Shown piece after piece: positions 8,812 to 27,767 of a stretch of 64,000 nucleotides of DNA (positions are counted from its first letter, which is position 1; each line of letters begins with the position of its first letter). Source of the stretch: Amphiscolops sp. MND2022 (lineage: Eukaryota). Made by a program: the position numbers and the translations under genes. The stretch is from positions 44,826,001 through 44,890,000 of the forward strand of contig OZ076411.1 in assembly GCA_964187785.1 (NCBI GenBank), read 5' to 3'. The notes below the pieces were generated by a model, which saw only the letters and a list, made by a program, of their open reading frames with translations, was not told where the DNA came from and did not search any database.

Positions 8812-8983
8812 TCTTTCACTGTGTTGAGAGTTTGACCATTCAACAATCTGAGCAATGTGGATTCGACTAACAAAGACAAGAAATCAAGATATTATCTTCT
8901 GATCACTTGCAACTAAATACTGTCAGCAGCAGAACAATAGTGAAATCGTACATGACAGGAGACGGATATGAATTCAATCTTAG
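8812..8983 (+). repeat. Segment B, 172 bp left flank of the large transposon, repeated at 27288-27459
   Basis: Direct sequence identity by eye. Confidence 0.95.
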
Positions 8984-9006
8984 CATTACGAGGCCAAAGT
9001 GGGAAA
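8984..9006 (+). repeat. Left terminal inverted repeat CATTACGAGGCCAAAGTGGGAAA
   Basis: Matches the reverse complement of 26220-26242 at 21 of 23 positions. Confidence 0.93.
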
Positions 9007-9017
9007 TGTTCAATTTT

Positions 9018-9330
9018 TCAAGAATCAAGAAAAGTGGTAGTTTAACGCAGCGAAGTGAATTGTTTCCCGATTCTTGAAATTTGAACTTCAAAGAAATTGT
9101 TTATGCCGCCTATAAAAGTCAAGAATTGAGAAAACAATAAAGCGCATGTATTTCCACTATTTTCAAGAATCGAGAAAAAGACATTCGAGAATCTAGACAC
9201 TAATTTTAATACATGGAGATAATGTGTTAACATTAGTTTGTCGATTCTCGAAATTTTGTCGATTCTTGAAAATTTTGTCGATTCTTGGAAATTGTCTGGA
9301 TTCTTAGAAAATTTTCCCGAATTCTTATTC
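9018..9330. repeat. Left subterminal repetitive region (TTCAAGAATCGAGAAA-type motif in both orientations)
   Basis: Copies such as ttcaagaatcaagaaa, cgattcttgaaa, tttcaagaatcgagaaa and a tandem run of tcgattcttgaaaatttt at 9241-9330. Confidence 0.8.
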
Positions 9331-10325
9331 AAATGTTACAATAGTGAATTTAATTCATTCAGTACGCGCGGTCCTTATGTATTTTTATTAAGTTTAATTG
9401 TAATTCATTTTTTTCAGTGTTTTTTTATTGCTCAAATTGAATCAAACAATATAAAAAAAATAGTGAATTTAATTGATCAGTTGATAATTTTTTTCATCAA
9501 ATTAACGGAAGAATCATTGTTAAAATTATAATAAAGGTTTACAATGATTGCTCAAGTTAAATTGTTCTGAACCAGTTAGATTCTAAGGTGCTAAAATATT
9601 TTTTAATTGAGACTTTTACTAGATTTTTTGAATGAATAATTCAATTTTTTTGCAGCAACGATTTTTTTCTGAACCAATAGCACCTCCGTTTTAGCTTTTT
9701 ACTTCGTTACTTGTCAAAAGTTTCTAAACCGTGAGTAACAAAAGCAAAATTGAATTGACATTGAGTCTTTAAAAGAATTACTAAATATTTCTAATCCATG
9801 AGCAACAAAGGAAAAACTTCAATTGAAATCGAGTCTTTCAATGAGTTATTAGAAACCAGTTGTCTGAAACCAACAGGAGCAACAAAAGCAAAAAGAAATT
9901 GAATTCGAGTCACTCTTTGAACTTTCAAGCCTCATCGATTTTGGCCACATGAAACAGGTTCCGGAAAACGAATTAGACCATCCTAATTGTTATTATCTCT
10001 TCGAGTCACTCTTTGAGTTTTCAAAAACTTTTAAACTAGGAATATAAATGAAATATTAGAACTATTTTAAATTTGAGTCAAAAATTTGAACACGAAAATA
10101 AATTTCATTGAAGTTTACCAAAGTACAGAATCATGTTCACGACTACATCAAATAATCGGATTGTGCCTCTTTCAAATTGTGTCTAATTACTTCTCGGTAG
10201 CTTGAAGCTGGATACACCCCTTCAATTGTCACCAAACCACATTTAATGAAGGACATGCTGAATATTTTCCGGATATAAAATCTCATTGACTTGATGTATT
10301 TATCGCTTTCTTCGTATGATCCTGG

Positions 10326-11662
10326 TCATCTGTCCCAAGATTTGCCGAGAACTGAGTCCCAAGATTCATTACATCCAACTTCAGTGCAGGCATTTTGAAT
10401 TGAAAACATGACATCTTTCTCTTTTTCGAATCCAAGGCTTCTTTTTGCAAAATCGTCAGCGATGCAAATAATCCCGGAGTAGCCAAACTTGGACCCTAGA
10501 GCCATACCCACTGCATGCTTCACAGCTGAATAAATGCCACACACTTTATCGATGGGGTGAATTAGTTCCTGTATCAAATTCTCGTGGGTACTTTTTAATA
10601 AATAGTTGCGTTCTTTGAGTTGTACCATAGTCGAAGGCATGGTCACAGTAACATCGTCACACTCTTCGGACACCATTGTCACAAAAACAATATGCTTGTC
10701 TTTTTTGTAAGTTGACTTCATTTCGATCACTGTTGCTGCCTCACCAGAGTGATCAAGGACCTTGGCACCAATTTGAAGTATCCCATTTATGCAAGGGAAG
10801 CATTTCATCGGTACTCGTTCGACCGACTTCTGAAAATAAAAAAATTGCTCATGAGACTCTTCACTGATATGACGCACATATGACACATCTCATGACGCAT
10901 AACTCATCACTTAAAAATGATTTCTGAGAAAAACTGACTTTTCCTGAATCAAATTCGAAAAATGAAAAAAATATATTTTTGAATGAAGTGCTTCTATGGT
11001 TAAATACTTACAGGGACCAATGTAGACATATCGACAGGCTCAGTTTGTTTCTTTGCTCCAAAGGTTACTTTTTTGGGCTTTGGAGCAGTTAATTTTTCTT
11101 CTTTATCGTCGTTTGAACAATAATTTTCGTCTTCGATATTATCAAGATTTGTCGACGAGGACGGCTGGTGAGCGACTCGGATGGCACATAGATCATTGTA
11201 TGGAAATTTCAAAGTGGGATAGTTTGTGTTAAGGGCTTTGATTTCTTCGTGGTCTTCATGCCAATTTTCGTAATCTTCCTCCAACAAAATTTCCATTACA
11301 CTTTTCACTGAGTCATTTTTGAATACCCAACCCGGCGTTTTTAGGCCGTCCTTCAAAAAACATACTTGATCGCAACGAGAAAGGAATTTTGGATTGTAAT
11401 CAAGTTGTTCTTTTTTTGTTCGACGGCGTTTTTCGGGTAAAACATCTCTTATCGCTGCAGATTTTCGAATATTCCACTTTTCAGGTTGCCCCCTTATGTT
11501 TTCTTCTACGTGAATTTCTGATGTGGTATTTTTGCCGAAATATTTCCACTGCACAATCACCGTCCAGTCATCTTTGATAGATACAATTTTTGCCTTCCAC
11601 CAAATAAAAAGTTCATCAACTGCATCGACAATGTCGTTAACTTGAAATTTTTTTGATAGCAT
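10326..11662 (-). CDS. Two-exon gene (11662-11012, 10829-10326; about 384 aa) with an N-terminal Tudor/Agenet-like chromatin-reader barrel
   Basis: FQVNDIVDAVDELFIWWKAKIVSIKDDWTVIVQW resembles Tudor-knot/PHF20-type barrels. GTAAGT donor at 11011 and TTTTCAG acceptor before 10829 join in phase 0. Confidence 0.65.
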
Positions 11663-11821
11663 CTTTTTCGGGATTTTTGGTATGAACGTAAGATGAAGTT
11701 AATTCGGGAATGAAATTTGAGATATGACACAAAAAATGCTGATCTAATATTTTGAAAATAAGCCTGTGAACTTCAGAGTGTGAAACTCATTTCTTTGCGT
11801 TTCGAAGACTCATTTTAGTGA

Positions 11822-11909
11822 CAATGTGACGCGTCACATTGGCCTCAAAAAGAGTCACTCTTTTTGGACACATTTGAACGAATCTTTGACGGTCAAAGAT
11901 TTGTTCAAA
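11822..11909. promoter_or_regulatory. Two palindromes in the divergent intergenic region between the Tudor gene and the transposase locus
   Basis: Perfect 20-bp CAATGTGACGCGTCACATTG (11822-11841) and an 18-bp-arm inverted repeat with one mismatch (11873-11909). Confidence 0.5.
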
Positions 11910-12038
11910 ATGATGGAAGTTTTTTTCAAACCAATATGACTCTTTTCCAACGGATGTAAATATCATGATAACATAATATGATAATATACTTGATAAAGAT
12001 CACACTTTTTTATAAACCATTACAACCTAATCTTTTCA

Positions 12039-13024
12039 TTGCTTTCAAACAATCAATTCATTGCTTATTATTCTCAAATGGATCTTTGGAAACAACATTC
12101 AATGATCATCGATGGCCGACATTTTATTGATTACGAACTTATCGATTATTTACGTGATCACACAGAGGGAAACAAATGCCGACAAGCAGAAGTCCTTGTA
12201 AAGCATGTCATCAGCGGAACCTCGTTGAACTTCCAGGATCTCATTGTGACATGGACCAAAAAAGGAATGAAACGTCACTCAGTCTTCATCGCAGTAAGTT
12301 ACTTCTGGTTGTGACACTTTTTCATCGTAAAATTAGCCTCATTTTGAGAAAAACGCATTTTTATATCAAAAAACTGCTTTTAAAGTAGTAATGACGAGGT
12401 ATAAATCATCACTCGTTTTTTTGCAGTTTTGTGATCTTCTTCTAGAGAAAAAATTATTTTAAAATCGATCTAAGACTTAAAACTATATATCATACAAATT
12501 TGTATCGATTTTTTCTAAACCGGGAGCAAACAAAAATTGCTCCAGAATCAGAAAAAAACCAACATATACATATCTGCATTTAAATTCAAACAAATGCTCA
12601 CAGTTTAGAATTGATTATTGTTTTTTCATTTCAGGCTCAAATAATGCAGCTGATTGTTCTGAGTGGCGGCAAAAGTCTACCCTGGTCACAAAAAAGAAAT
12701 GCTTTCATCAAGGCTTTTTTGGGGTTGGATTTGTACCCTGCAAACCCTTTCCAGGATGTTGTTGCTTCAGCGACGAGTTGTTGTAGTGCTTCCATGACAA
12801 CTCAGGAAACACAAACAGATGAGGTCGCAACGATTGAAACACCTTCCATTCAAATAGACGCAGTCTCCGTGACTGAACCCCCTAACTCCATTTGTATCGA
12901 CGAAGTCCCAGCGACTGAACCCTCTACCATTCGAATGGACGAAGTCCTCGTGACTGAACCCCTTAACCCTATATGTATTGACGACGTCCCCATGACTGAA
13001 TCTCAAACGATGATGAAGCCTTAA
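12039..13024 (+). CDS. Two-exon ORF upstream of the transposase (exon to 12293, intron 12294-12634, exon 12635-13024) with about 14-aa VTEP tandem repeats
   Basis: GCA|GTAAGT donor and TTTCAG|GCT acceptor join in phase 0; repeats VTEPPNSICIDEV, ATEPSTIRMDEV, VTEPLNPICIDDV. The stop overlaps the transposase ATG (TAATG). Confidence 0.55.
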
Positions 13025-14781
13025 TGGATGAGGAAAACGTGTCGTCTCGGAATCGCAAAACTAAGGCTCGAAAACTGGAACTGAAAAGAGTAGCAAGGTT
13101 GCAGAAATGTCCGTATATTTCTTGGAAATACGTTTTGAATCACGCCAAAACTAACAATGTTGACTTCGAGATACTAATAGAAGTGATCCTGAAAGTATCA
13201 AAAACGAAACAATCATCGTATCTTAAAACAATTGTTGAAAAACTTTTCCTAAATATGAAGTCCAAAGAGGCGATGATTTCAAGTCTTGCTGTTTCGGTTC
13301 GATCAGGAAATATTGATGTAATTTCAACGATTCGGGCTAATTTATCGATCAACGGACAGCTGCACAACATTATTCCATCCTCAAGAGCGATCCGAAGTTT
13401 CTCGAAGATCTTAACGAATGCGTTCATTTTGATGTGCAAACCAGAAGCCACGTTCTCAGGGTTTCGATGTGATCTCGTCAAGTGTGTCAAAATCGCCGCG
13501 TGGCTCCTTTTTGAAACTGAAGACCTTTCTGAATTGACTATCGATTTATGGGGAGATGGATGTGAGATTGGTGGTGTCGATCATACAAGAATGTGCTTCC
13601 GGATACTGAAGAATTATTTCTCGAAAGTTACCGTTCAATCAGCTACTGTGGCATTTTGTTTTAGCGCATTTCATGGTAAAGATAGTAGATTTACCCTTGA
13701 ACAAAATCTCGGACCTTCAGTTGTTGGGAACCAAGAAACAGGATGGCTGTACAAACAAACCAAAGAACTCTCATCTCAAGGTGCCATCGTGACTTGTTCT
13801 GGAGACAATCCTTATTTATATCGTTTGATTGAGGGTATTGATAGCGATGCCTCATCAAAATATCCATCTGATCTTGCACTTTATGTTGGTGAGGCAAAAT
13901 TTTTCCCAACTGATGTCGACCCTTCAACAGGATTCCGCTACAAAGTTAATGTGCCCTTCAGGAGAGAAATACCCCCTCAATCGCTCGTACATCTCGATGA
14001 CATACGATGTGTTGTACCGGATGTCACCCACATGATCACCCGTTGTGTCGAAAGTGACCTCAAGAAAGTTGCCCAAAAAATCGTTCGAAAAAAATATCCT
14101 TATCACAAGAAAACTATTGAAACCCTCGAAGAAAACTGCACTCGAAGAGGAATAAAGAAACCCAGATTCAAATTCGACGTGGAGATCAGAGGAACAAGTG
14201 ATTTGAAAAAACCAACAGTTGGATCCGTCTCTTTGTCTGGAACGTCTGCTATTGTTGCCATTGCTGAAAAAGATGAATTTGAAGGTGTAGAAGGCTTACC
14301 AAACATTTTCGACAATTTATGGAACAATGAGATTATCTTTGACCCCAAGAACGACAACATGGACAAAGATGATGCCCGTGCAGCCCGCAATGCGTTTTAC
14401 GCCCTCAAGAAACTGCACTCCGACAAAATTCCAAATTCAGACAGTTATAAAACCAAAGATTGTGCCCAATTGCTACAAACAAGCTTGAATAAATGCGCAA
14501 AACTTTTGAGAGGTTCAAAAAATGGCCTTGACATTGAACAATTCGAAATTTGGTCCGAGACATACTATCAATGCTCAATTCTTTTCTTTTCCGGAAAACA
14601 CGGTTTGACACCATATAAGTTGAAGATGATAATGATACCCCAGATTTTGAAGGCGGGTTTCGCAATGAGTCCTTGGTACCATATGTGTGAAGCAATGGAG
14701 AAATCAAATCACCACGCACATAAAGACTTCCAAACGAAAACGATGAGAGGTGGAGGGAAAATTCATGTGAATTACCAGTGA
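13024..14781 (+). CDS. 585-aa DDE transposase, Chapaev/Transib/RAG1-core-like
   Basis: Ordered motifs LWGDG (D178), CSGDNPYL (D261), PDVTHMITRCVE (D333/H336), SLSGTSA, LTPYKL and CEAMEKSN (E559) parallel RAG1 D600/D708/E962 and Chapaev ISGDG/GGDWKFL/DTLH/TPYMH/LEKLN as I recall them. Confidence 0.8.
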   Translation: MDEENVSSRNRKTKARKLELKRVARLQKCPYISWKYVLNHAKTNNVDFEILIEVILKVSKTKQSSYLKTIVEKLFLNMKSKEAMISSLAVSVRSGNIDVISTIRANLSINGQLHNIIPSSRAIRSFSKILTNAFILMCKPEATFSGFRCDLVKCVKIAAWLLFETEDLSELTIDLWGDGCEIGGVDHTRMCFRILKNYFSKVTVQSATVAFCFSAFHGKDSRFTLEQNLGPSVVGNQETGWLYKQTKELSSQGAIVTCSGDNPYLYRLIEGIDSDASSKYPSDLALYVGEAKFFPTDVDPSTGFRYKVNVPFRREIPPQSLVHLDDIRCVVPDVTHMITRCVESDLKKVAQKIVRKKYPYHKKTIETLEENCTRRGIKKPRFKFDVEIRGTSDLKKPTVGSVSLSGTSAIVAIAEKDEFEGVEGLPNIFDNLWNNEIIFDPKNDNMDKDDARAARNAFYALKKLHSDKIPNSDSYKTKDCAQLLQTSLNKCAKLLRGSKNGLDIEQFEIWSETYYQCSILFFSGKHGLTPYKLKMIMIPQILKAGFAMSPWYHMCEAMEKSNHHAHKDFQTKTMRGGGKIHVNYQ

Positions 14782-15335
14782 ATTTGCTAATCGATAAAAT
14801 GACCACAATTTTCGCAATCGAAAAAAGCGAGACCTATACCGAAATTTGTCAAAAAATTGTGCCTCTTCCAGTGATTGATGTTGGTGCTCAGCGAAAGAAA
14901 CAGGAATTGCTCTTTGGTTTCCGATTCCACGTGGTTGGCTTTTTCCCTGGAGTCAAAGACAATCAAAAGGGAGTTGAAGACATGATAATTGAATTGGGTG
15001 GAGAAGTATTGACAAAAGAAAAAGCACTGGGCTTGACCAAACGTCATAGTAAAACTCCGAATTGCTTCATTGTACTCTATAACGATTTCGAATTGAAGAG
15101 GGCCACCACTGGAAACGGAGACCACAACTCTGCATCTGGTTCGGAAAGTGACAACCCCGTGAAATTTACCAAATCATCATCCAGGCGAACAATCAAGCCA
15201 CGTATCATGGTGAAGGGCCCAGCTCAAACCTGTCTACTATTTGCGGCAACGGATTTTCAATTCCTGAACGTTGCCTACATCTTTGATACAAACAACTCTG
15301 ATCGTGTTCTTGACCCTTCAAAGTATCTTATGTGA
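14778..15335 (+). CDS. BRCT-domain ORF directly after the transposase (possibly its spliced C-terminus)
   Basis: GFRFHVVGFF...VEDMIIELGGEVL and C-terminal FQFLNVAYIFDT..S.RVLDPSKYL follow the BRCT pattern. Confidence 0.6.
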   Translation: MNLLIDKMTTIFAIEKSETYTEICQKIVPLPVIDVGAQRKKQELLFGFRFHVVGFFPGVKDNQKGVEDMIIELGGEVLTKEKALGLTKRHSKTPNCFIVLYNDFELKRATTGNGDHNSASGSESDNPVKFTKSSSRRTIKPRIMVKGPAQTCLLFAATDFQFLNVAYIFDTNNSDRVLDPSKYLM

Positions 15336-15844
15336 AGTGCCACTGAAATTGAACGAATCTGTGTGAATGATCAACGACCACTTTTTGCGAAACAGAGAAA
15401 TCCTAACAATACCGAAAATGTTACCACATCATTGGTTTATGCATTGAAGATCTCGAGAAAGCGGGCCCGCGAAGAAGAACAAGAATTTGACCACGTAAAT
15501 GATAATATGAAGAAAGACAAACACACATGAACGTTTTTTTTATGACAAGGCTTTTGACATGGATCATCTAATCCTATCATTTATATGACTTTTCGAAAAT
15601 TTATTCTTGGTCATTGAATGATCATCTATGATGTTTTCAAAATCTTTGTCCTGATCACTGATTGATCGTCTATGATGTTTTCGTAGAAAAAACCATATCT
15701 CTTGAAGAATTATCAAAAAATCAAATGCTTGAAAAATGAATAAACCAAATCAATAATTCAAATATCAAATCAATAATTATTCAAAAAAGTTTTTTCTAAA
15801 CTTGCTAAGAGAGGAGAATGCTAAGAGAATATTGAGAATAGTAT

Positions 15845-17003
15845 TTATTCTGAAAACATCTTTCTTGCTTCTTGATCCCCATAATCATATCTTAGCTCGT
15901 CGAAGGGAGGAATGTCATGTTTCGCCACCATTAACAACACAGATTTGCTGGAGGATAGATTCAAAATAACAGGTTTGACGTTGGTGTGCTTAGGAGATTT
16001 GTGGCTTATCAATCGGGCCATGCATCTATTCTTCATATGATCGACTACTGGACATAGTTCGTTTGAAGCATCGATTAGATGTTTCAGTGAAATCTGAAAA
16101 AGATATTCACTGCATTCTGGGTGATCAGCCATGTAATCGTTGGCAGTGATGCCCTTCACGACTTTTCCATGGTAATCATCAAGGATTTGATCCTTGTCTA
16201 TGAAATCGGTGGTAATGACTCCCCGGCCGAATCCTTTGATGTTGACGTCACATATGAATGGCCACGTCTGATCTTTGCAGGTTTTCGTCAGGATCTTTTT
16301 AAATTGTTCATGCTGATCTTCTCTTGAGGGGAGCATCAAAGCCTGTGATCGTAACGAGACAGTCTGTGTCTGGAGTGCCTCGGGTTTCAACCGACATTGA
16401 ACGATTTTCCAGGTCTGAAAAGAGTTGGTGTTAATAATCAAATTTATACTTGCGATTTTGTGAAATTTCTTTTTAAAAAATATTTTTTTTATTTCTTCAA
16501 CAATTTCTTCTTCAATAAAATTCAATGCTCTTGAATCTCCCAATTTAATGCTCTTAAGATAACGTTTCTTCTGAAGTTTTTTAAAATGACATATTTTGAT
16601 TGGAAAATAGACAGCAGAAAAACTGAAATACTTTTTTGAGGTCTTCATTTTCGTTCCACCCTCTTGTTTTGTACAGACTTTTGAGTTTCTCATGGGTCGG
16701 GTTCTGGGCATAACGCTTTCCAAAATCACAATACTCGAGGAAAGCCTTAGCCCTTGCGACTTGTCTCGCATATTTTTGGGCACTTTGCCGGGAAACGACA
16801 GCTGACCCCAGTTCTCGCTCAGTAATTTCATTTTGGGCCGCCCACTCCTTGTCAACTTTCAAGGCCCATATTTCAGACATTGTCCGTTTCTTTTTCAAAA
16901 ATGTTGCATCGGGCGATGCTGATATTGGCATATAGGATTTGACGTATTTTCCCACTCTGACGTATATTCCCACTCGATGGTGTCGCGGCTTCTTTTTTTC
17001 CAT
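15845..17003 (-). CDS. KMT5A/PR-Set7-like SET-domain protein, last two exons (17003-16632, 16570-15845)
   Basis: KGFGRGVITT..DYHG, YLFQ..IDAS, MARLISH, LLMVAKHDI..FDELRYDYGD. A 61-nt GTATTT...TTCAG intron (16631-16571) joins the two ORFs in phase 0. Confidence 0.85.
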
Positions 17004-17009
17004 CTGCAG

Positions 17010-17210
17010 AAAAATCATTTGAAAATATTTCTAAACCATGAGCACATCTTTTCAATATGCAAAAAAAAATAATTTTAAAATACGTCTAAACCACAAGCAC
17101 GTCTTTTCAATGTGCAAAAACGAATCATTTGAAAATATTTCTAAACCACGAGCACATTTCATCAATATGCGAAAAGAATCATTTGAAAATATTTCTAAAC
17201 CACGAGCACA
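17010..17210 (+). repeat. About 55-bp tandem repeats, each carrying the 15-bp element motif
   Basis: Motif copies at 17029, 17084, 17139 and 17193 within repeated atcatttgaaaatatttctaaaccacgagcaca. Confidence 0.85.
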
Positions 17211-17299
17211 TTTTTTCAACAATGGTTCAAATTATTTTTAAAAAATACCTTATCCAACACTTCCTCCGCAATGACTCGAGAATTGAAAGAGGTCTTTCC

Positions 17300-18147
17300 C
17301 ATTGACGAAAAGAAAAACTTGGTTGTCATAACTTATTCAATTTCTTCGTCTTCGCTTCTGAGGAAGGCCCTCTTCACCACTTCGGGTTGCGCCCGCATGA
17401 ATTGCGGTCTCACGCATTTGTGGTACACTTTCATGGCTTCAACGAATAGCGGCTCCACAGTATGTTTGCTTCGAATTGTTGACCTTGAAATCAAATAAAC
17501 AATATCAGTATTTGAGTGGTTAACAAAACAAGTTTACTTGATCTAGATTTTTTCCAAAAAAATGAAAAAGACATCAAAAAATGGAAAAAAAAAACAAAAA
17601 ATGAAAGTTTTGGATGAAAAAATACTTTACCGAAAAAAGGTTCCACCTCAATTTCACCAGCACCATTTTTGCTCTGCTTGGCGTTGATGATGAGTTGCAT
17701 CATCGAATGCACAGTAACAGATTGCACCGTCTTTGTCATCATGGGAACCGGCTCAGTGTACATGAAAAGGTATGTTATAATACCGTGAAATAAATTGACC
17801 CTTTGATGGTAACTAAGGCCATCATTTACTGCATATTCGTCCAAAATTTCGCGGACATAACTCTCTAATTCGGGTCGTACCTTTGCCGACCAGAGTCCTT
17901 TTGCAGCATTTCGTTTTGATTCAGTTTCGTCTTGGGGTTCCGGAAGTAGGGGTCGTTTTAACGGATTTACTTTTTCGGTGGAAGGGATCTCGTCAAAACT
18001 ACCGGAATTGGTTGATGGTAAATTTTCAAAAACAATGTTTTCTTGTGTGTAATTGAACGTGCGGTTTCCATAATTTAATGGCCGAATGGGACTCTCACTT
18101 GGACTGAAACTGAAATTACTCACAAAAAGAGTCTTGTTAGAACCCAT
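17300..18147 (-). CDS. Probable upstream exons of the SET gene, forming part of a degenerate tyrosine-recombinase-like fold
   Basis: ORF 17491-18147 plus an open frame at about 17484-17330 (STIRSKHTVEPLFVEAMKVYHKCVRPQF..RAFLRSEDEEIE). Junctions need a 1-nt correction. Confidence 0.45.
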
Positions 18148-19403
18148 TTGGTAGTTGGGAGTAGACTGATATATTGCATTTGAATTGTGCGAATGATTAG
18201 TGTATTATGGAAGCGGAGGAGGTAACAAAGGTGTGAGGGAAGTTGAGTCTGTGGTAACGAGCCAAGAAAGTTAGTGCTCGCGTTAAGATCAATTTGTCTA
18301 AGAGGCTGACTCGACATTGTGAAATTTTGACAGAAATTATAGAGAGCAGAAATTGAAAAATGATTCTAAGTTGAATGCAGCCGCTTAAATATATATCTTT
18401 AATAACCCACATCATGTGATAATCCAATGACACCATGCCAAATCGCGGAATATTAATTACCACCCGTGGTGTCATTCGATAATCCGCGATGTCGCATGGT
18501 GTCAATGGATTATCAATATATGGATGCTGATAAAATGCCCATTAATCTTCCGCAAAAATTGACATAGTTACTTCATCGCACAATTTTAAATGAAATTTGA
18601 AAAGACTACTATACCTTAATTAGTTGAAACTCTAAGAATAATCGGCGCAATAATAATTAAACATGCGTGAAGAATTCAGAAATGGATAATTAACCATTAA
18701 CCTCATGTTTAAAGATATAAATTTGGACATTTAATCGATTTCTTCTTGCTCCCAGAACGACACAAGAATTCACGTAAGCATAATTATTCATGATTTTAAG
18801 AATCCCCACACGCATAATTAACCATGGCAAATTTTCTTTTAAGGCAGTAGCACACGAAGTTTATTCAAATTGCAATTGAATTTTTGTGGATTCTTCAAAG
18901 TAATGATTAAACATTCGCATGCAAAAATTCTTCCAAACTTAATGCTCCTGGTTTAGAAAATTGATGTTTTCATTAGGTTTTTCATTATTAAAATCATGAT
19001 ACAATTTTCAGTACATGTTAACTACTCTTGCGCTATTGGTTTGGAAACTTTATCAGCTCAGGTTTTCTTATAGAACTTTGTATTTTAATAGCAAAATAAA
19101 AAACGTTATCGAACTTGTATTTTCATCGACTCATATGCTCACGGTTTAAAAACTTTTAATTCATTTTAGAATTTTTTTTTGTAACTACATTCTTGTACTC
19201 GCAGGAAGCTAGACTGAAGTGCTAGATATAACCTCAAAAGATTTTTTTTCAGCAAAAGAATAATAGCCCTCTTGAATTTTCGTGTTTTTTGGAAGAGTAA
19301 ATGAAAAAGATTAAAGGCGTCCATAATCAGAAAATCATAAGTATAAATCATACAAAGTATAAGTACAACATAACAAGTTCAGATCATGATCATCTTATTC
19401 AAA

Positions 19404-22400
19404 CTAAGCCCCTGAGGGGGATGATGGCAATTCAATTGCCGAATTCTTCTGTCTCTTGTTTCTCTTTTTCATTAGGGCTCTCTGTTCGTCATAGGGAAAA
19501 CGAAAAGCCAAGTTGGAATGTGCTGAGGGGGGAATGCAGCGTGCAACTTGACACTTCGAGAGTGAAAGCTTGTTTTCTTCATCGGGGGCACAATCGAGTA
19601 GTAGCAGACAAACTTTCTCTGCGTAAGGGACCAGTCTAAACAACATTTGTTTTTCGAATGTTCAAACAATTTTGTTGTTCAACATCAATAAGGGTTGAAA
19701 TTTTCTCATTTAAAAAAAAAGATATCTGGACAAATGTAAAATATGCATTTTGCTCACGGTTGAGAAACTTCTTCTATGATTAGTAAGTTGTTAGCAAAGC
19801 TAATAAAAATTCTCACTAGTGAGCAAAAGCAAGAAAAAATCAATAAATTAATATTTTGTGGGTGAAGATAACGTGATCGTCTGGTTTCAATTCGTTTTCC
19901 AGCAATGTGATATCGTCGATTCGCTCTTCGAATTTCCTGGGTGGATCATGCGCGTACTCCAATTCGGGACTCCGCGAACACAGCTCGGGTATGATGGCTT
20001 GGAAATCATCGCCCACCCGTGTTTCAGCCTTTTTGTCCAATTGCTTGTTCTTGGACGGGCCACGGATCTTGAAAAAAGTTGAATCCTAATTTTTTCTATG
20101 TCAGAATGAACATCAAAAAACCACTTGACAAAAACTTGATCAATCACTCTTAAGGAATTTATTGACTGTGGATGAATAGGCGCTGGTGGTGGTATGGATG
20201 AGGTGCTGGAGGAGGTATCGGTGGAAACTTTCGGTTGAACCCGGGAGAGAGCAACAGACCAAAAACCCTCAGGCACAAGACGTCTTTTCAGCAGGGTCAT
20301 GATCATCTCTTCGAGGAGATCAAAATGAGGACACGCCTTGAAATAAAAATTTGATATATTAATTTCATCAACGCTTGTGAGAGGAAAAAAAAACAGATTT
20401 TTGCTATCTCAAAAAACTGATTGCTATTGATAATTGATAAAAACTTTTAAAAAATTGATAGAAAGCAAAAAATCATTGAAAAATTATTGACTCTTCAACT
20501 GGATCATTTTTCACATTTTTCAAACTGGTTTACTTCTTTGATGATTGGCATTTCTTGATGGAATTTTGTCTTGAGGCGCTTCAAAAAATTCCACACCCAG
20601 ACCGAAGACACATCGCCTCGACCATCATTCTTCTGCTCCATGACATGCGAGTATATGAGAGCAGCCAACACTCCCGACAAGCAGGGATAGACACTGTCCG
20701 CATCATCGTCGTTTCGCACATGGGAGTCAATCACCAAACCCATGTGACCAAAGGAGAGAAAATTCGATCCGAGTGCGATGGAATCCCCAACTGTGAGGAC
20801 GCAATGAATCCAATTTGAGGGCATTATGATGGTGTCACCTGCTTTTGCATGGATTCTATGGCATCCGCCTTCAATCGAAGCCATATCGCCAAACGACAAG
20901 TTTTAAAAAATTAATGTTCTTTTTGTCAAAATATTCAGATTCATTTCATCAGAGTCTCAGTTGAGGAAAAACTCAAAATTGATCACAGTTCAGATACTTT
21001 TTTGCCGGAAATGACCTTGAATTTTTTGACAAAAAAATTGACAAAACGAGTGAGTCAGCGAAAAAACTCACGGTTTAGAAATAAAAGATTTATTCAAGTC
21101 AGTGTATATACTTGAATGGAATGAAATATAGCTTCAGATAAACAATGTGTTGAAAAATACTTTTCGACATATAACTTTCTGGGCATTAACTGGAATAGAA
21201 CATGAATGGCTCACGGTTTAGAAAAAATTGTAAAAATAGGTAGCCTGTTAGTAGATTCGAACTTGGTAACTACGACTTTGAACTCTCAAGTTTAACCAAC
21301 TATGCCACCGAGCCCTTGTATACATTAAATTTTCATTGCCATATACTTACTGACTGGGGTTGTCATGCAAGCAGTATTTCTCGAACATGTTGAGATTCTT
21401 TTTTGTTGGCTCAGCAAGCCAAAAAATTTTCTCCCCGCGCAACACCACATAGAAGACTGATGTTCCGGAGAAATCAATGTGCCATGGCGTGACACAACGG
21501 TCGTTTGAAAGCAAGAGGAAATTCCAAGTGCTTGCCGCGAAATATCCTTCGCTATGGGGGGTTAAAGATTCGGCAAACGGATCCATTGCCATCTTCCGTA
21601 CTGCTGTCGGTGGTTTGAAGACCTTGATAATATACAATCAACTCTTTTATCGCTAACAGAAAAAAAATCTTACTACTAGTAAGTTTTTTCCTTCTGACAA
21701 AACAAACACTTCTGCTATAGCTACTAGTAGTACTAGTAGCTATAGCAGAAGTGTTTGTTTTGTCAGAAGGAAAAAGGGTTAAAATTTAAAAAAAAATCAT
21801 TTTTACCCCAGGACGGAGGATTACGTCAATAACATTGACCGGAAAAGCATTCAATGGCGCAGAGTCTGGATCCCGTTGTTCTGCGGGGTATTCGGCTCTT
21901 GACAACTTTCGTGAGAGGACAGGCTTGGGGGACGATGGTGAACTTTGCAAAAAAAATTGTTATTGTTTTGCCTCCTCATTGAAAGACTTCTGGTATATAT
22001 TTTTTCTTCAGAGAATTGTTAGTTAGTTTCTTAGTAGGTTAGTTTCTCATTGCTCACGGTTTAGAAAGTTCCAAATACTCACTTGACAAAAACGAGCTGA
22101 TTTGCAGTCGAGTTTTTTGTCTGGATCAGACATGAATCCCAGCAAATGTTCGGCATTATCCGGAAAACTGGTGATGTGAGCTGGTATTTGCGGTACACGC
22201 AGCCCTTGTGCGTTCTTGGCCGCATCTTTCCACAGGATCGGAATCCCGTGAAGCATGAAGAAGGTCACTTGCTCAATTTCTCGATCAACGTGGCCACTCC
22301 ATGTCACGGTTTTCGCCTCAGGGTTGATCCGTGTTCCTTCGATATGATCGAAGTACCGTTGAGAACCCTCAGTTGCTGACTTTCTGGGGTAGCGAAGGAA

Positions 22401-23671
22401 TTTTGCTGTCTCCTTCCACGCGTGCAGATAGTTTCGATCCATGTGTCTTTCATAACTATATTTATGCAAAAACACTTGATCGCATCCAACACATGTTTTG
22501 AGATCTCCGATGACAGTCTCTGCAAAATTAAAACTTGATTGTTTACAGTTGAAATTCTTAATGTATAAAGTTCTTGAATTATAAGTTTGAACAGGAAAAT
22601 ATAATGACCAGTACATTCAAAAGACTTTGACTTTACACGACACAACTTTCATGCGCCTCAAAACTCTTTTTGCTCAATTGTTGGCGTACGTCATAGAGAA
22701 ACAACTGAATCACTGGAAAAAAAATTGAAATCTGAAACGGGAGGTTCTAAATACATCTGAAGACTCAAAAAAATATTATGTACACATGCAGGGGCCTTCA
22801 AAGGAAGATTAATTTGGCTTCGAATCGTTTGCTTTTTTGCAGAAATATTTTTTGACCAGTTATTGACGTACATCGTAGAGAAACAACTGAAACACGAGAG
22901 AAAATGTTTTCTTTAAAAGTGAAATGGGAGGGTCTGAATACATCTGGAGGTTCAAAAAATTGACATGTACACATGCAGGAGGCTTAAGAGAAAGTTATTT
23001 TGTCGTCGATTACTGTGGTTTTTTGCATAAAAACGTTTTGACCAGTTATTGGCGTACGTCATAAAGAAACAACTGAAACGTTGAAAAATTTTTCAATAAT
23101 TTCGAAATGGGAGGTTCTAAATACATCTGGAGGTTCAAAAAATTGACATGTTCACGTGCAGGAGGCTTCAAGAGAAAGTTATTTTGTCTTCGATTTCTTT
23201 GCTTTTTTGCATAAAATTTTTTTGACCAGTTATTGGCGTACGTCATAAAGAAACAACTGGAACGGTGGAAAATTTTTTTCAATAATTTCGAAATGGGAGG
23301 TTCTAAATACATCTGGAGACTCAAAAAATTGACATGTACACATGCAGCGGGCTTCAACGGAACAATATTTTGGCTTCAATTTTTGTGTTTTTACATTAAA
23401 AAAGTTTTTTGACCTTTTATTGGCGTACGTCACTAAAGAAACAACTGAAACACTGGGAAAACTTTTGATTGAAATCGAAGTGTTTGAACTCACTGTTTTT
23501 GAACAAAGCTGGAGCTTTTCCCTCGTTGAGTCTCTGGACTCTTTTCGCGCATGCTTTTGACTCTTTATGCCGTTCTAAGGCCAATTTCGACGAGACAGGT
23601 TGTCCACAAAGGTCGCAAACTTTCGGAAGATAATTCTTCGGAGAATCCTGTTTTCCTTGGCATTTCTTCAA
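19404..23671 (-). CDS. Multi-exon gene: C2H2-type zinc finger(s), KDM2/KDM7-like JmjC demethylase, ELM2-like domain
   Basis: Exon peptides in order: CDLCGQPVSSKLALERH, CVGCDQVFLHKYSYERH, HGIPILWKDAAKNAQGLRVP, PVNVIDV, VFKPPTAVRK..VTPWHIDFSGTSVFYVVLRGEKIFWL, GDTIIMPSNWIHCVLTVGDSIALGSNFL, ETRVGDDFQAIIPEL. That all exons form one transcript is inferred. Confidence 0.7.
19850..20060 (-). CDS. ELM2-like exon
   Basis: ETRVGDDFQAIIPEL resembles the ELM2 start IRVG.EYQA.IP.L; only the N-terminal motif is recognised. Confidence 0.6.
20531..20902 (-). CDS. JmjC catalytic exon 2 (distal His)
   Basis: CHRIHAKAGDTIIMPSNWIHCVLTVGDSIALGSNFL matches KDM2 CQRIELKQG.TF.IPSGWIHAVYTP.D.LVFGGNFL. Confidence 0.88.
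21241..21315 (-). ncRNA. tRNA-derived/Pol III promoter-like sequence inside a JmjC intron
   Basis: Minus strand GGGCTCGG-TGGCATAGTTGG (A box)...AGTTCGAATC (B box); acceptor and T stems do not pair well, so not a functional tRNA. Confidence 0.45.
21351..21622 (-). CDS. JmjC catalytic exon 1 (HxD)
   Basis: TPWHIDFSGTSVFYVVLRGEKIFWL matches KDM2/PHF8 TDFHIDFGGTSVWYHV.RG.KIFWL; acceptor before 21622, GTAAGT donor at 21350. Confidence 0.9.
21685..21775. repeat. Perfect 91-bp palindrome (45-bp arms, 1-nt spacer at 21730)
   Basis: tttttccttctgacaaaacaaacacttctgctatagctactagta-g-exact reverse complement, inside intron 21806-21623. Confidence 0.95.
22680..23450. repeat. About 185-bp tandem repeat, four full units plus a partial
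   Basis: Anchor ttggcgtacgtcatarAgaaacaactgaa recurs at about 22681, 22863, 23049, 23233 and 23420. Confidence 0.9.
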
Positions 23672-24965
23672 GTGTCTTTAGAAGTTGTATTTACGAGTCG
23701 ACTCGTAGTCGCAAAGTTCACATCTCATGATATCAAGTCAAGTTTCTGTGACAAAGTTTCACTATGATAATCCACTGGTTTTGGCTCACGGTTTAGAAAC
23801 AAATTGAAAATTTCATCATGTCAAACATGGGCGAAATTTTATACAAAACGTGGTGAAAATTTCATTCAAATCATCAGAAATTCTCGTCAAATTCATTTTC
23901 AATCTGATTTTTGTTTTGAAGTGCTCATGGTTTAGAAATAATGTTTCTTCAAAAAATGTATTCGAAGTTAGGTGAAGTTCAAATTCATTAGTTGGGTGTA
24001 AAACTACATTCAAATCATCTCATTTTATTATTGCAAAGGCTCGTCGAATTGATTTTAAAGTGCATTTTCAAAAATTAGAAATAACGAATTACCTTCAAAG
24101 ACAAAAAGGGTGAAGAGAGAAGAGGTTACTTCAAAGATCAAGCGGTAAACAAGAGGTTTGCACGAAACGGAGCAACTGTAAAATCGAAAAATAGGGGTCT
24201 TCCTAGGAGTTCGAAATTTTATTTTAATTATCAGGAGTCCGAAAAAGAACACAACAGTGAAAATTGAATTTGCACAAAAAATATTCAAATACTAAATTAG
24301 GCGAATGGCTCATTTATACCAAGGTATCTGCAGGTATGTAGCTATGTAGTTGATTTCGACAGGCCCTGAATTAATGAAAATCCTTGATTTCGTCAGGTCT
24401 GGGACTTCGCTGTTTCAAGTTATTTTCGAGTTTTTGTTACTTGTATGTATGTTCTTTTAATTCAATTTTGCCTAGAACTCAATTTTTTGACGCTCACGGT
24501 AGTTAGTTTCAAATAAATACATTGTTAAAGTTGCATAAAAACTGTGAAATACAAATGAAACGGCTTAATGATCTTTCGAACTTATTGGTATTAAAATGTA
24601 TTTCCGGACTCGTGAATAGCAATCGAATAATAACAGTGATAAATTGAGTTTTAACGTGCTAGGCGAATGACTTGCTGCAAAGTGATTTGAAGGAAGGAAT
24701 TCAAATGAATCGGCGAGTTTGCTCGCGGAGTAGAAATTTTATACAAGCATTTGTTTGCATTGCTCGCGGAGTAGAAATTTTATACATGCATTTGTTTGCA
24801 TTGTGAAGCAATATTTTCGTATAATGCAAAGTCTTATTTGCATTGTGAAGCGAAACGAAATTTCCTTACAAGATTGATGCCTGGATATTTTATAAAATTT
24901 CGCACTTTGTGCCCAAATGTGCCATAGTATGATGATGTTTAAAATCAATTCGAAAGATAGTTTTT

Positions 24966-25407
24966 GCTCAGGGTTTAGAAACAATGATACGAATCTAATT
25001 CCATAATTCAAAAGAAAACTCAAAACAAAAACTCAGCTTTTGCTCACAATTTAGAAATAATTCCAAGAATCAAAAAGAAAACTCAAAAGAAAAACTCATG
25101 AAATTTCTAAAAGAACTTAGCTTTTGCTCACGGTTTAGAAAAAATGAAACGAAAGTAATTCCATATTTCAAAATGAAAACTCAGAGGAAAAACTCATGAA
25201 AACTCATTAGAAAAACTCAGTTTCTGCTCACGATTTAGAAATATTGAAACGAATCGATTTTCATTATTACTGACTCAAATTACAAACTCATAATTTGGCT
25301 CATGGTTTAGAAATAACCTTGATGACTCAACTCATAACTCATAACTTGGCTCTTGGTTTAGAAAGAAAACTGATGACTCAACTCATAACTTGGCTCATGG
25401 ATTAGAA
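24966..25407 (-). repeat. Cluster of seven 15-bp element motifs near the right end
   Basis: GCTCAYGGTTTAGAA variants at 24966, 25042, 25126, 25226, 25298, 25349 and 25393. Confidence 0.9.
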
Positions 25408-25512
25408 ATAATCTTGATCATCATGATGATATTTATTTAAAATCGAGAATGAAATTGCAATGAGAATAAAAATCGAGAACGAAATTTATTTAAAATTGAG
25501 AATCAAATTTTG

Positions 25513-25740
25513 TTGCACTGGTTTGTTGGGGGAATGGGTTCTGATTTGTTGATAAGCAGGTTTGTTCATCGATGCCATTCGTGGACAGTAATGTCTGCCA
25601 GCAGAACCTGCCATGTGTATTTCAAGAAGGACGGAACGAACAGATGCCTTGAGGTTGAAAAGGCCTTGCGTTTTGATCCCAAGCCAGTCCGCCAAGTCCC
25701 GGGTATTGGCCAAAGCAGTAGAAAGTCCAACCACGCGAAC
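25513..25740 (-). pseudogene. ASCC3: Captured fragment of a host ASCC3 (Ski2-like helicase) exon
   Basis: [75 protein letters not shown] closely matches the ASCC3 second helicase cassette as I recall it; preceded by an intact TTCAG acceptor. Confidence 0.85.
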
Positions 25741-25899
25741 CTGAACAAATTTTTGATTTAAAATTGAGAATTCAAATAAAATTGGTTTAAAAAAGGATGA
25801 TATTTATATAAAAGCGAGAATGAATTTTTTTAAAAACAGAGAATCAAATCTCAATAACATTGATTTAAAAAAAGAATGGAATTTAGTATGATTAGATTA

Positions 25900-26160
25900 G
25901 ACCAAGAATTGATGAAAAGTTTTGAAGAATTGATGTACAATTTTCAAGAATTCATATAAATTTTAAGAATCAACGTAAAATTGAAGAATCGAGAAAGTTT
26001 CAAGAATCGCTAGAAGCTGTTTTTCTCGATTCTTGAAACATTTCTCGATTCTTGAAACATTTCTCGATTCTTGCATGCTATGCATTATATTTGAATCAAG
26101 AATCGAGAAAAATCCCCACTTGCTTTCGCTTAGTTTTTCTCGATTCTTGAAGTTTGTATG
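25900..26160. repeat. Right subterminal repetitive region (TTCAAGAATCGAGAAA-type motif in both orientations)
   Basis: gaagaatcgagaaa, tandem ttctcgattcttgaaaca, caagaatcgagaaa; same motif family as 9018-9330. Confidence 0.8.
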
Positions 26161-26219
26161 TATTACCATTAGTTCAAGAATTCAAAAATTACTACAACGA
26201 AATCGTTGTAGTTCACGTT

Positions 26220-26242
26220 TTTCCGACTTTGACCTCGTAATG
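26220..26242 (-). repeat. Right terminal inverted repeat (reverse complement CATTACGAGGTCAAAGTCGGAAA)
   Basis: 21/23 match to the left TIR; followed by the AG TSD. Confidence 0.93.
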
Positions 26243-27767
26243 AGTGGTGTTCAAACCACCGGCCTCTGTACGATTGACGCAGCCTGTGATAACTGTGCAA
26301 GTTTCCAGTAGAGCAAATGCATTCCCGTGTTTGATGTCTGACTGATGTCATGTGTTTCAGTCCTACGGTCGTCGTCTTCTGAACCGCTTGTTCTGCCTGA
26401 ACTTCATACACTTGAATGGACGATGGATGAACTCCCTAAAGACAAGACGAACACGGTAACTGAAAGGGATCCCCAATCACGCGTCGGAGCACAATGGACT
26501 GAATGGACGCTTATTTGTAATTTGTTTCGATGTTTTATGTGTCTTGTTTCCAGTAGACCATCCACAACACGACATTTATGCTATTCAGGCCAAAAACCAA
26601 GACGTTCCACTTGTACATAGTATAGTGATAACTGTAAAAAAAAACTTACTTCAGCATTGACCCATGTGCGGTTCCTCCATTAAAAACTACTTTGAAGGAA
26701 ATGCTTGAAACATCACCTACGGATTGTCCCAACTATCGCTTCAAGGTGTGGACATGGCATGAAAAGAGATTAGAGTTCACGTTAGCTGCTATCAATCCCC
26801 GACTCCCACCGAAGATGTTTTTTGCGAACGTGAATTCTAAAGACACAAACGTAGCAATGGTACGCTGTGTCACCGCGCATCAGCTATGGAAACAAGATGT
26901 CGTGACTTCCCCTCCTGGAGATGTGTATCACTCAACCGCTGGTTGGTGGCTATTAGTCAATTCCCTGGATGAATCATCACTAGTGTCGCCGGGAACTCTG
27001 TTAATTAGTCTTCAGAATATACGTACACTCGTCGAGCTCGACAACACTCTTTGTTTCCGTTTAGCTAAAATCTTTCGCAGCAAAATCCATATTCAACATT
27101 GGTTACAGCTACTAGCTATAATTTTCTGTCGCCAAGCCAAAATAGGCCTATTAGACAAACAACCATATACGTTTGAAACGCCTGTAACAGTACTGGAAGC
27201 ATTCGCCGTTGTTCGCGATTGGTCAACCACAAACATGGGAAACCGCCCGCTGCGACAACTAAGTTCGGCAAGATCGTCGAGCCATTGTCTTTCACTGTGT
27301 TGAGAGTTTGACCATTCAACAATCTGAGCAATGTGGATTCGACTAACAAAGACAAGAAATCAAGATATTATCTTCTGATCACTTGCAACTAAATACTGTC
27401 AGCAGCAGAACAATAGTGAAATCGTACATGACAGGAGACGGATATGAATTCAATCTTAGTGGTGTTCAAACCACCGGCCTCTGTACGATTGACGCAGCCT
27501 GTGATAACTGTGCAAGTTTCCAGTAGAGCAAATGCATTCCCGTGTTTGATGTCTGACTGATGTCATGTGTTTCAGTCCTACGGTCGTCGTCTTCTGAACC
27601 GCTTGTTCTGCCTGAACTTCATACACTTGAATGGACGATGGATGAACTCCCTAAAGACAAGACGAACACGGTAACTGAAAGGGATCCCCAATCACGCGTC
27701 GGAGCACAATGGACTGAATGGACGCTTATTTGTAATTTGTTTCGATGTTTTATGTGTCTTGTTTCCA
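26243..27767 (+). repeat. Composite duplication C-A'-B'-C' (C 26243-26552; A' 26551-27289; B' 27288-27459; C' 27458-27767)
   Basis: Constant offsets of 19341 (A), 18476 (B) and 1215 (C); junction overlaps CA, TC and AG. Confidence 0.95.

Follow-up and report, generated by a model that had tools for sequence, protein, structure and literature searches.

A 17.3-kb DNA transposon family with predicted histone-methylation genes as cargo and subfamily-specific motif arrays: a possible case of chromatin self-management

Do the genes resembling a writer, an eraser and a reader of histone lysine methylation that lie inside one DNA transposon of Amphiscolops sp. MND2022 belong to that transposon, and if so, what might it use them for? 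The locus that raises this question lies in contig OZ076411.1 of assembly GCA_964187785.1, in a stretch of 64,000 nucleotides (positions 44,826,001 to 44,890,000 of the forward strand) which we refer to as the window and whose own numbering is used throughout. A first-pass annotation, made from the letters of the window alone, had marked 8984-26242 as a DNA transposon with a chromatin toolkit and had proposed that the element controls its own chromatin state by targeting histone modifiers to an array of short private motifs. Following this up, we can say with high confidence that 8984-26242 is one copy of a multi-copy family of cut-and-paste DNA transposons, 17.3 kb in length. Besides its transposase, the element has a SET gene, a JmjC gene, a Tudor-ORFA gene (Tudor-like in its N-terminus, with ORFA as our name for the part encoded by its second exon), and an open reading frame (ORF) of no known domain, ORFX. 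The gene models were built by hand, and the domain calls given below rest on single exons.

The ends of the element, with their terminal inverted repeats (TIRs) and target-site duplication (TSD), and the empty site are as follows.

8984-9006, + strand: left TIR, CATTACGAGGCCAAAGTGGGAAA, with a 5'-CA terminus; homology with the two further copies described below, B and C, starts exactly here
26220-26242, - strand: right TIR, ending ...CGTAATG-3'
8982-8983, unstranded: left TSD copy, AG, from the reading of the flank and the single AG at the empty site
26243-26244, unstranded: right TSD copy, AG, from the same two sources
27288-27767, + strand: paralogous empty site, in which 8812-8983 is joined straight to 26243-26552 with one AG at 27458-27459

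The 23-nt TIRs pair at 21 of 23 positions and are the only such pair in the 64 kb, where none is expected by chance, and the element's termini read CATTACG...CGTAATG, i.e., 5'-CA..TG-3'. The empty site lies about 1 kb from the element and matches its flanks without interruption at 482 of 482 positions (27288-27459 corresponding to the left flank and 27458-27767 to the right). Since the filled site reads AG/AG and the empty site holds a single AG, the 2-bp TSD is proven, and since the flanks are identical to the empty site, the insertion is very recent. A second, independent 2-bp TSD, GC/GC, borders copy B. With TIRs, a TSD with its empty site, a transposase of predicted DDE/RNase-H fold and multiple copies, the element has the features of a class II TIR (cut-and-paste) transposon. 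The first-pass reading of a DNA transposon with TIRs and a 2-bp TSD is thus borne out by the 21/23 TIR match, the AG/AG pair, the exact empty site and the recurrence of the same ends in other copies.

The flanks form a unit of about 1.2 kb that is present in two tandem copies, with the element in one unit only. The two units may be a true tandem duplication, or they may be the filled and empty alleles of a heterozygous site set in tandem by the assembler; either origin leaves the filled/empty pair as it is. The left unit consists of segments A (7210-7948), C (8812-8983) and D (26243-26552) and the right unit of A' (26551-27289), C' and D' (the last two within 27288-27767), at 99.5-100% identity. 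A further 863-bp segment (7949-8811), bordered by a duplicated TC, lies between A and C in the left unit only. It was considered as a related miniature inverted-repeat transposable element and dropped, as it has no TIRs.

A word-indexed search with the 585-aa transposase ORF retrieved 25 homologues, all in metagenome-type assemblies, and two loci in ENA assembly ERZ25074608 proved to be more copies of the element, B (L001 and L003) and C (L002 and L004). Copy B is 84-91% identical to the window copy, and its start and end coincide exactly with the window TIR ends. Copy C is mostly 95-98% identical, falling to 89% in the right-hand part, with the same left end and a degenerate right tip. Both contain the same genes in the same order as the window, and the cargo lies between the same ends in three copies. 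Other copies with the same cargo between the same ends, for which the first-pass annotation had suggested a search, therefore do exist.

More distant relatives keep the same genes, as listed here with the identity of their transposase to that of the window.

L006, transposase 66% identical: Tudor, ORFA, SET, ORFX and JmjC, in the same order
L007, transposase 44% identical: ORFA, Tudor, SET and the BRCT tail of the transposase; a retrotransposon interrupts the JmjC side
L005, transposase 41% identical: SET, Tudor, ORFA and JmjC, rearranged
L008, from a different run, transposase 31% identical: a 419-aa SET ORF, the JmjC tail, and weak ORFX and ORFA matches
L010, from a third assembly, transposase 29% identical: SET and BRCT

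Across these five diverged lineages from three datasets, SET is found in 5/5; for JmjC and for Tudor/ORFA, the same holds for the majority of the lineages open to checking. The identity of the cargo drops in step with that of the transposase, from 56% to about 33% and then about 30% for SET and from 64-68% to 40-42% for JmjC. Comparing the window with copy B, the ratio of nonsynonymous to synonymous substitution (dN/dS) is as follows.

Tudor-ORFA gene: Tudor 0.18; ORFA 0.15-0.30
SET gene: 0.26-0.37
JmjC gene: JmjC 0.27-0.54; finger exon 0.09; ELM2 exon 0.23
Transposase: 0.39; BRCT 0.29

Accidental ORFs, taken as a comparison, give values of 0.8-4. These comparisons of sequence indicate that the chromatin genes are integral cargo, kept throughout the diversification of the family. 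Three findings that the first-pass annotation had named as telling against it did not materialize: the cargo does not consist of single-copy host genes, it is not missing from other copies, and it does not evolve neutrally.

The family is large. The window's transposase falls in a cluster (at 90% identity) of 21 members, three of them 992-995 aa long, with sister subfamily clusters of 128 and 77 members, and a profile search with the transposase matches 558 clusters at 50% identity, with E values below 1e-30 for 187. A SET protein in the cluster collection, P0076, shares the window's private substitutions over the region compared, so that the two probably stem from one genome. The transposase region is tandemly duplicated in copy C (L002 11951-15551) and, independently, in L005 (6531-8264 / 9385-11118). 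Between the window and copy B, the tract 21638-24700 shows a divergence of 2.6-3.1%, against 10-13% in other non-coding parts, so that the element is a mosaic; this suggests recombination or gene conversion among family lineages.

The exons and ORFs of the cargo are as follows.

16632-17003, - strand: SET exon 1, a conserved N-terminal region without a known domain
15848-16414, - strand: SET exon 2, a KMT5A/SETD8-like SET domain, with RLISH in the window and RLINH in other copies
23494-23728, - strand: JmjC gene exon 1, two C2H2/C2HC zinc fingers
22083-22519, - strand: JmjC gene exon 2, a third C2H2-type finger and the N-terminal part of the JmjC fold
21351-21622, - strand: JmjC core exon, with the HxD iron-binding motif (WHIDF)
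20507-20903, - strand: JmjC exon with the second Fe(II) histidine (NWIHCV)
19843-20067, - strand: last JmjC exon, with the ELM2-like motif RVGDDFQAIIPEL
11012-11662, - strand: Tudor-ORFA exon 1, whose residues 1-70 form a Tudor/Agenet-type beta-barrel; donor CCCT/GTAAGT, phase 0
10176-10829, - strand: Tudor-ORFA exon 2, a domain without known function with homologues in L005, L006 and L007
17348-18147, - strand: ORFX, no known domain; conserved blocks at 17348-17482 and 17626-17961

The SET gene consists of two exons (17003-16632 and 16414-15848) separated by a GT-AG intron in phase 0; GT-AG introns are likewise present in the JmjC and Tudor-ORFA genes. Its second exon matches the Pfam SET family at E 7.7e-8, and its 14 best matches in the PDB are all KMT5A/SETD8, at E 6e-7. 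The motifs GRGV, YHG, RLxNH and ELxYDY are kept in all subfamilies, with an N to S change in the NH motif in the window copy alone. The match to KMT5A is of low identity (E 6e-7 over about 120 residues), too low for a specificity for H4K20 mono-methylation to be inferred from it. A word-indexed homologue search with the SET exon returned only two copies of the transposable element (TE) and no cellular relatives.

The JmjC gene has at least six exons on the minus strand, including a putative small one between 22083 and 21622. Against the PDB, the core exon (21622-21351) matches PHF8 at 4e-12, KDM2A at 1.6e-10 and KDM7 at 4e-9, and the exon at 20903-20507 matches ceKDM7A at E 6e-8. The two halves of the Pfam JmjC family match in the right order across the exons, with KDM2/7 members as the nearest relatives. 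The Fe(II) ligands HxD...H are kept as in KDM2A/B and PHF8/KDM7, which the JmjC exons match best, and WHIDF and NWIHCV align to the ligands of PHF8 and KDM7. KDM2A/B combine their catalytic domain with a DNA-binding zinc-finger module, and in the window family, too, the JmjC domain is fused to a zinc-finger module. Unlike KDM2A/B (CXXC) and PHF8/KDM7 (PHD), however, this module has three C2H2/C2HC fingers, and the gene is transposon-borne and multi-copy. By its sequence the protein is a predicted demethylase of KDM2/7 type, in which three N-terminal C2H2-type fingers replace the usual histone- or CpG-reading module. At the other end, the ELM2-like tail scores 24.4 bits in Pfam (cut-off 21.7) in a partial match to profile positions 2-23 of 53, and it is present only in the window and copy B. 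ELM2, which like KMT5A occurs mainly in animals, is a histone-deacetylase-recruiting module in MTA, MIER and CoREST; the SANT domain that stands next to it in those proteins was not found beside the ELM2-like motif.

Two repeats lie in introns of the JmjC gene. The first intron is mostly filled by a 186-bp tandem repeat at 22667-23466 (4.3 units, 81% matches), and at 21685-21775 there is a perfect palindrome of 45+45 nt with a 1-nt spacer. Since copies B and C lack about 58 nt at the latter position, the palindrome is at least partly private to the window copy.

For the Tudor-ORFA gene, sequence searches say little and structure prediction says more. The Tudor exon retrieves only Agenet in Pfam, at E 0.19; no Tudor, ORFA or ORFX piece has a significant Pfam match, ORFA retrieves nothing from the PDB with phmmer, and hhalign finds no match between the Tudor profile and the 452-aa ORF of L008. 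When the Tudor sequence profile is compared to the PDB, Tudor 2 of PHF20 is the second match, at E 0.08. The AlphaFold2 model, made from an alignment of five subfamily sequences, shows residues 1-70 as a five-stranded barrel with block means of the predicted local distance difference test (pLDDT) of 76-89. Foldseek places PHF20 Tudor 2 at the top for this barrel (prob 1.0, TM 0.72, E 0.017), followed by TDRD1, Agenet H3K9me2 readers and PWWP. W21, W33 and W39 are invariant in the five Tudor sequences and could form a putative aromatic cage. As such, the Tudor-like identity of the N-terminus of the Tudor-ORFA protein is supported at fold level by this model.

The sole hint on ORFX comes from its homologue in L006 (14186-14938), which has a sub-threshold match to Pfam Rua1_C (E 9.6e-4, 19.9 bits vs a cut-off of 27), the C-terminal domain of a fungal transcription regulator. 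The intron-containing genes for a Tudor-like, a SET and a zinc-finger/JmjC/ELM2 protein that had been proposed for this locus therefore hold up, with ELM2 as a partial match and Tudor by fold. In contrast to the GT-AG introns found in every cargo gene of the window's subfamily, L008 (Logan ERR15087781) and L010 (ENA ERZ21818094) have long, apparently intron-less ORFs (a SET of 419 aa and transposases of 1301 and 1125 aa).

The transposase gene and its C-terminal domain are located as follows.

12644-15527, + strand: transposase gene, a single 992-aa ORF (P0001) in copy B; DDE core at 13033-14766
14778-15332, + strand: BRCT-like C-terminal transposase domain; Pfam BRCT/BRCT_2 matches in six family members

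No Pfam transposase family was found in the 585-aa ORF and 18 relatives (19 members, E up to 0.1), and the transposase profile has no match for its core among PDB sequences. The AlphaFold2 model of the core (residues ~260-690; 10-residue block-mean pLDDT mostly 55-89) shows an RNase-H-like beta-sheet with D307/D311 on beta-1, D394 after beta-4, a large helical insertion, and E689 in a helix. Its best Foldseek matches are the Hermes (hAT) transposase and RNase H, both weak and non-significant at E 0.03. At the C-terminus, six family transposases match BRCT/BRCT_2 at E 1.2e-4 to 1.4e-3; only one of the six, P0082, lies above the Pfam cut-off (22.7 bits vs 21.3), and the window's own BRCT piece is below detection. 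A family profile of this region finds the PARP1 BRCT as its best PDB match, weakly, at E 0.22. We therefore describe the transposase, as modelled, as a predicted RNase-H-fold DDE enzyme with a C-terminal BRCT domain. The separate "BRCT ORF" of the first-pass annotation is in fact the C-terminus of the transposase, split off in the window copy by a deletion; intact copies encode one 992-aa protein.

The same annotation had called the element CMC-type, a label that fits its DNA and not its protein. We took the CMC/CMCT signature criteria as restated in PMC12730594, where the TSD range is 2-5 bp; the 5'-CA..TG-3' termini and 2-bp TSD of the element agree with the DNA part. Animal CACTA elements such as ENS1_Cis have 5'-CAC..GTG-3' termini and a 2-bp TSD (PMC6004678), and the window family resembles CMC and animal CACTA elements in its 5'-CA..TG-3' termini, its 2-bp TSD, its subterminal arrays and its being a large multi-gene element. 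In contrast, the CMC protein signature C(2)C and H(3-4)H is not in the transposase. The only conserved cysteines and histidines between D394 and E689 are C464, H469, C624 and H686, and a conserved C-x-D-x2-H-x3-R-x2-E block, D(2)H(3)R(2)E, stands in place of the signature. Pfam, PDB sequence and Foldseek searches gave no similarity to CACTA, Transib or RAG1 transposases, and, unlike in CMC, the best weak fold match is Hermes (hAT) rather than RAG1 or Transib.

Three arrays of short repeats accompany the genes.

9012-9290, both orientations: left subterminal array of TCAAGAATCGAGAAA, 7 copies
25940-26150, unstranded: right subterminal array of TCAAGAATCGAGAAA, 6 copies
9721-25408, - strand on the left and + strand on the right: private motif GCTCAYGGTTTAGAAA, 16 nt, 22 dispersed copies

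The 13 copies of TCAAGAATCGAGAAA lie within about 300 bp of the two ends, where 0.43 would be expected. For GCTCAYGGTTTAGAAA there are 22 copies at up to two mismatches and 24 at up to three, against 0.06 expected, and none in the remaining 47 kb of the window. The private motif array that had been noticed at first pass is therefore real and, within the window, found inside the element only. All copies are non-coding and outside conserved exons, i.e., in introns, promoter-proximal or intergenic, and since the flanks of individual copies are unrelated, the motif is a discrete site of 16-18 nt. Ahead of the start codons, copies stand at distances of 25-190 nt for SET and 56-210 nt for JmjC; others occupy the divergent region between transposase and Tudor, and a right-end array holds nine (seven of consensus type at 24966-25408 and two variants at 24721 and 24762). 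The motif is on the minus strand left of 17.2 kb, with one exception (12596), and on the plus strand right of 18.9 kb, switching on either side of ORFX, so that the array is mirrored about the element's centre. Copies B and C have GCTCAYGGTTTAGAAA in the same mirrored layout, with local tandem expansions in copy B.

In L005, L006 and L007, GCTCAYGGTTTAGAAA is absent and each has another motif. That of L006, GCTCCCGGAGTCGTTAC, occurs in six copies, on the minus strand in the left arm and the plus strand in the right arm, and has the half GCTCNCGG in common with GCTCAYGGTTTAGAAA; the two window variants, GCTCGCGGAGTAGAAA, are intermediate between GCTCAYGGTTTAGAAA and GCTCCCGGAGTCGTTAC. In L005 and L007 the repeated unit is about 60 bp long, includes TGGTTTCCACG and is present 14-16 times. 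Such comparisons indicate that the sequence of the motif turns over between subfamilies and its arrangement persists. Selective constraint on the motif instances was considered, with 94% vs 87% identity in their flanks (p = 9e-5), and rejected, as near-consensus ascertainment predicts about the same value.

The copy in the window is itself a dead, decayed, non-autonomous member of the family, with at least eight lesions. Its transposase has been split into three ORF pieces (12644-13009, 13006-14766 and 14778-15527) by a frameshift near 13009 and by the net disappearance of some 90 bp between 14766 and 14778, most of which is a single deletion of roughly 70 bp; a stop also lies at 15333-15335. 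In ORFA, an in-frame TGA at 10326-10328 replaces the AGA of copies B and C, and in finger 1 a TAA at 23678-23680 replaces their GAG; the TAG acceptor of the second JmjC core exon, present in both, is destroyed at ~20904, and the NH motif of SET has its N to S change. The ORFs are intact in other copies. Since the flanks are identical to the empty site, these lesions are older than the insertion, and the window copy was presumably mobilised in trans by an intact relative.

What, then, might the cargo do? Our preferred reading, which we hold tentatively and at somewhat less than even confidence, is that the element manages its own chromatin, in a form of histone-level anti-silencing analogous to that of VANDAL transposons and their VANC proteins. 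A sequence-specific DNA binder encoded by the element would recognise the motif array, the zinc-finger-JmjC protein being the best candidate and the transposase the alternative. Through its binding, the demethylase, the methyltransferase and the reader would be concentrated wherever a copy has that motif. Repressive methylation could then be taken off by the JmjC protein over the range known from KDM7/PHF8 (H3K9me1/2, H3K27me2 and H4K20me1), and the SET and Tudor proteins could set and read a replacement mark, so that the promoters of the family would stay open. The proposal of the first-pass annotation that the element controls its own chromatin thus keeps as its footing the integral cargo, the selection on it and the subfamily-specific motif arrays that parallel VANDAL/VANC; the BRCT gene, the CMC label and the intactness of the window copy have had to be given up. 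A fuller version, which we offer more hesitantly and regard as doubtful when taken whole, would make the family an independent histone-based counterpart of VANDAL. It would have a full lysine-methylation writer, eraser and reader set and a zinc-finger-guided KDM2/7 enzyme acting on co-evolving motifs, each subfamily de-repressing its own copies, together with an undescribed, superfamily-level lineage of BRCT-fused DDE transposases.

Several observations weigh against chromatin self-management. The window copy itself cannot be functional, the Tudor assignment is one of fold similarity at E ~0.02, and the ELM2-like tail, confined to the window's subfamily, points toward repression. H4K20me1 of the KMT5A type is tied no more closely to activation than to compaction, replication and repair, so that the effect could run in either direction. 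Conservation of motif positions between copies is no greater than ascertainment alone predicts, and the inverted symmetry of the motif about the centre would suit transposition no less than chromatin.

It is unlikely, though less so than any other rival, that the cargo serves cut-and-paste transposition itself by way of the break-repair (H4K20me/53BP1-type) and replication-licensing axis, biasing repair of the donor site or timing excision to S phase so that copies are gained, with the motif arrays as binding sites of the transposase or an accessory protein that help to synapse a 17-kb element. Such a use would suit the fusion of BRCT to the transposase across the family and the nearest matches of the cargo, which are KMT5A for SET, PHF8/KDM7/KDM2A for JmjC and PHF20 Tudor 2 for Tudor. 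PHF20 Tudor 2 binds dimethyl-lysine, and proteins of these kinds have links to repair pathways. Motif orientation is also mirrored in the window, B, C, L006 and L007, as in subterminal repeats bound by transposases. However, many motif copies lie deep inside the element and beside promoters, which is unusual for subterminal binding sites, and a separate subterminal repeat, TCAAGAATCGAGAAA, is already present.

Chromatin-guided targeting or self-restraint, in which the reader and modifier set would steer integration into, or install, a chromatin state such as that of TE-rich heterochromatin and so lower the cost to the host, seems to us quite unlikely. The chromodomains of some retrotransposons target H3K9me regions, TE capture of chromatin readers is widespread and its use in targeting has been documented in general, and an ELM2-like motif with a KMT5A-type SET is compatible with repression. 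The three mapped insertions are all in TE-rich DNA, but three insertions in a TE-rich genome are no statistic, and neither a demethylase nor internal motif arrays would be needed for this purpose.

Distinctly improbable is a plain cis-regulatory role, with the motif as a site that the element's genes share, through which a transcription factor of the host or the element co-regulates them, and the chromatin proteins acting in trans on host or general targets rather than being recruited by the motif. It would suit the copies just upstream of the SET and JmjC starts and those between the divergent transposase and Tudor genes, which face either way with respect to the gene; in contrast, the nine-copy right-end array and the copies in introns and 3' regions are not promoter-like, and the rapid turnover between subfamilies argues against a conserved host factor. 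Finally, although the window copy is full of lesions and its tandem-duplicate flanks could be a mis-assembled heterozygous insertion, the idea that the cargo consists of passive passengers (Pack-type capture of host genes), or that the locus is a segmental duplication or assembly artefact, is very improbable and largely refuted by cargo kept with matching divergence down to 29-31% transposase identity in three datasets, by dN/dS well below 1 with ORFs intact in other copies, and by the precise ends, TSDs and empty site.

Chromatin self-management by a transposon has precedents, which bear on how new the present family is. In the account of Hosaka et al. 2017 given in PMC12730594, the VANC protein of the Mutator-like VANDAL elements of Arabidopsis binds DNA, brings about a loss of DNA methylation and is described without histone-modifying domains. 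Set against that account, the window family is like VANDAL/VANC in combining an accessory function encoded by the element with short, family-specific non-coding motifs that differ between related subfamilies. It is unlike VANDAL in its cargo of SET, JmjC and Tudor-like genes, in a transposase unrelated to MuDR and in a TSD of 2 bp rather than 8-10 bp. The window element has no homology to VANC, and motif binding in our family is putative.

The red-algal Plavaka elements of the EnSpm/CMC clade carry PAG1-3; PAG2 combines an N6-adenine methylase with SET, and PAG3 joins a ParB domain to a poorly defined 2-oxoglutarate (2OG) oxygenase (bioRxiv 10.1101/2025.02.11.637652). Like the window family, they are large TIR transposons that stably carry genes for a SET protein and a 2OG-dependent oxygenase, with repeat arrays proposed as binding sites for an accessory protein (PAG3). 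Unlike them, the window family has a clear KDM2/7 JmjC-zinc-finger fusion, a KMT5A-like SET, a Tudor-like gene and a BRCT-fused transposase, and that transposase is without C(2)C and H(3-4)H. Phytophthora has HarbingerS and MuDR families with SET genes, and fungal KDZ, Plavaka, EnSpm and Helitron elements carry TET/JBP dioxygenases (PMC12730594). These, too, are DNA transposons encoding an enzyme that acts on epigenetic marks; the HarbingerS, MuDR-SET and fungal TET/JBP elements belong, however, to other superfamilies and have a single accessory enzyme, with no histone demethylase, reader or motif array reported. In the full-text literature (of incomplete coverage, Repbase not included), we came across no account of a transposon that combines a JmjC demethylase and a KMT5A-like SET with a Tudor-like gene and a BRCT-fused transposase. 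The novelty claimed for the cargo set at first pass therefore stands as far as the set itself is concerned; the concept has precedents in the Plavaka SET and 2OG-oxygenase genes, HarbingerS, TET/JBP and VANDAL.

The surroundings of the element are those of a TE-rich genome. All three mapped insertions (window, B and C) have unrelated flanks rich in TE and retrotransposon gag, pol and integrase remnants. In the window, remnants of long-terminal-repeat retrotransposons lie at 2897-3736 (+ strand), at 34920-35555 (- strand) and in the 34-44 kb region, with gag zinc knuckles, an integrase H2C2 and an rve core. The plus strand of the 34-44 kb region is strongly T-rich, with an AT skew of -0.24 to -0.33. 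We recognised no host gene anywhere in the 64-kb window, where the flanking ORFs are all retrotransposon remnants or without a known match, and found no tRNA or Rfam match in it.

For the annotation of TEs, the transposase family described here, with its 558 clusters at 50% identity and no Pfam model, appears to be uncatalogued in Pfam, and its inclusion would improve the detection of such elements. For their biology, TEs are usually viewed as passive targets of silencing, and the counter-measures known or proposed so far (VANC, TET/JBP, Plavaka SET and 2OG oxygenase) act on DNA methylation or are poorly defined. The present family unites conserved, recognisable enzymes of histone methylation and a reader with a candidate cis-targeting code that changes between subfamilies. 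If its proteins do act on their own chromatin, anti-silencing or self-management by a transposon at the level of histones would become directly testable, the family would be a natural example of a sequence-programmed demethylase, and it would help to explain how large DNA transposons persist.

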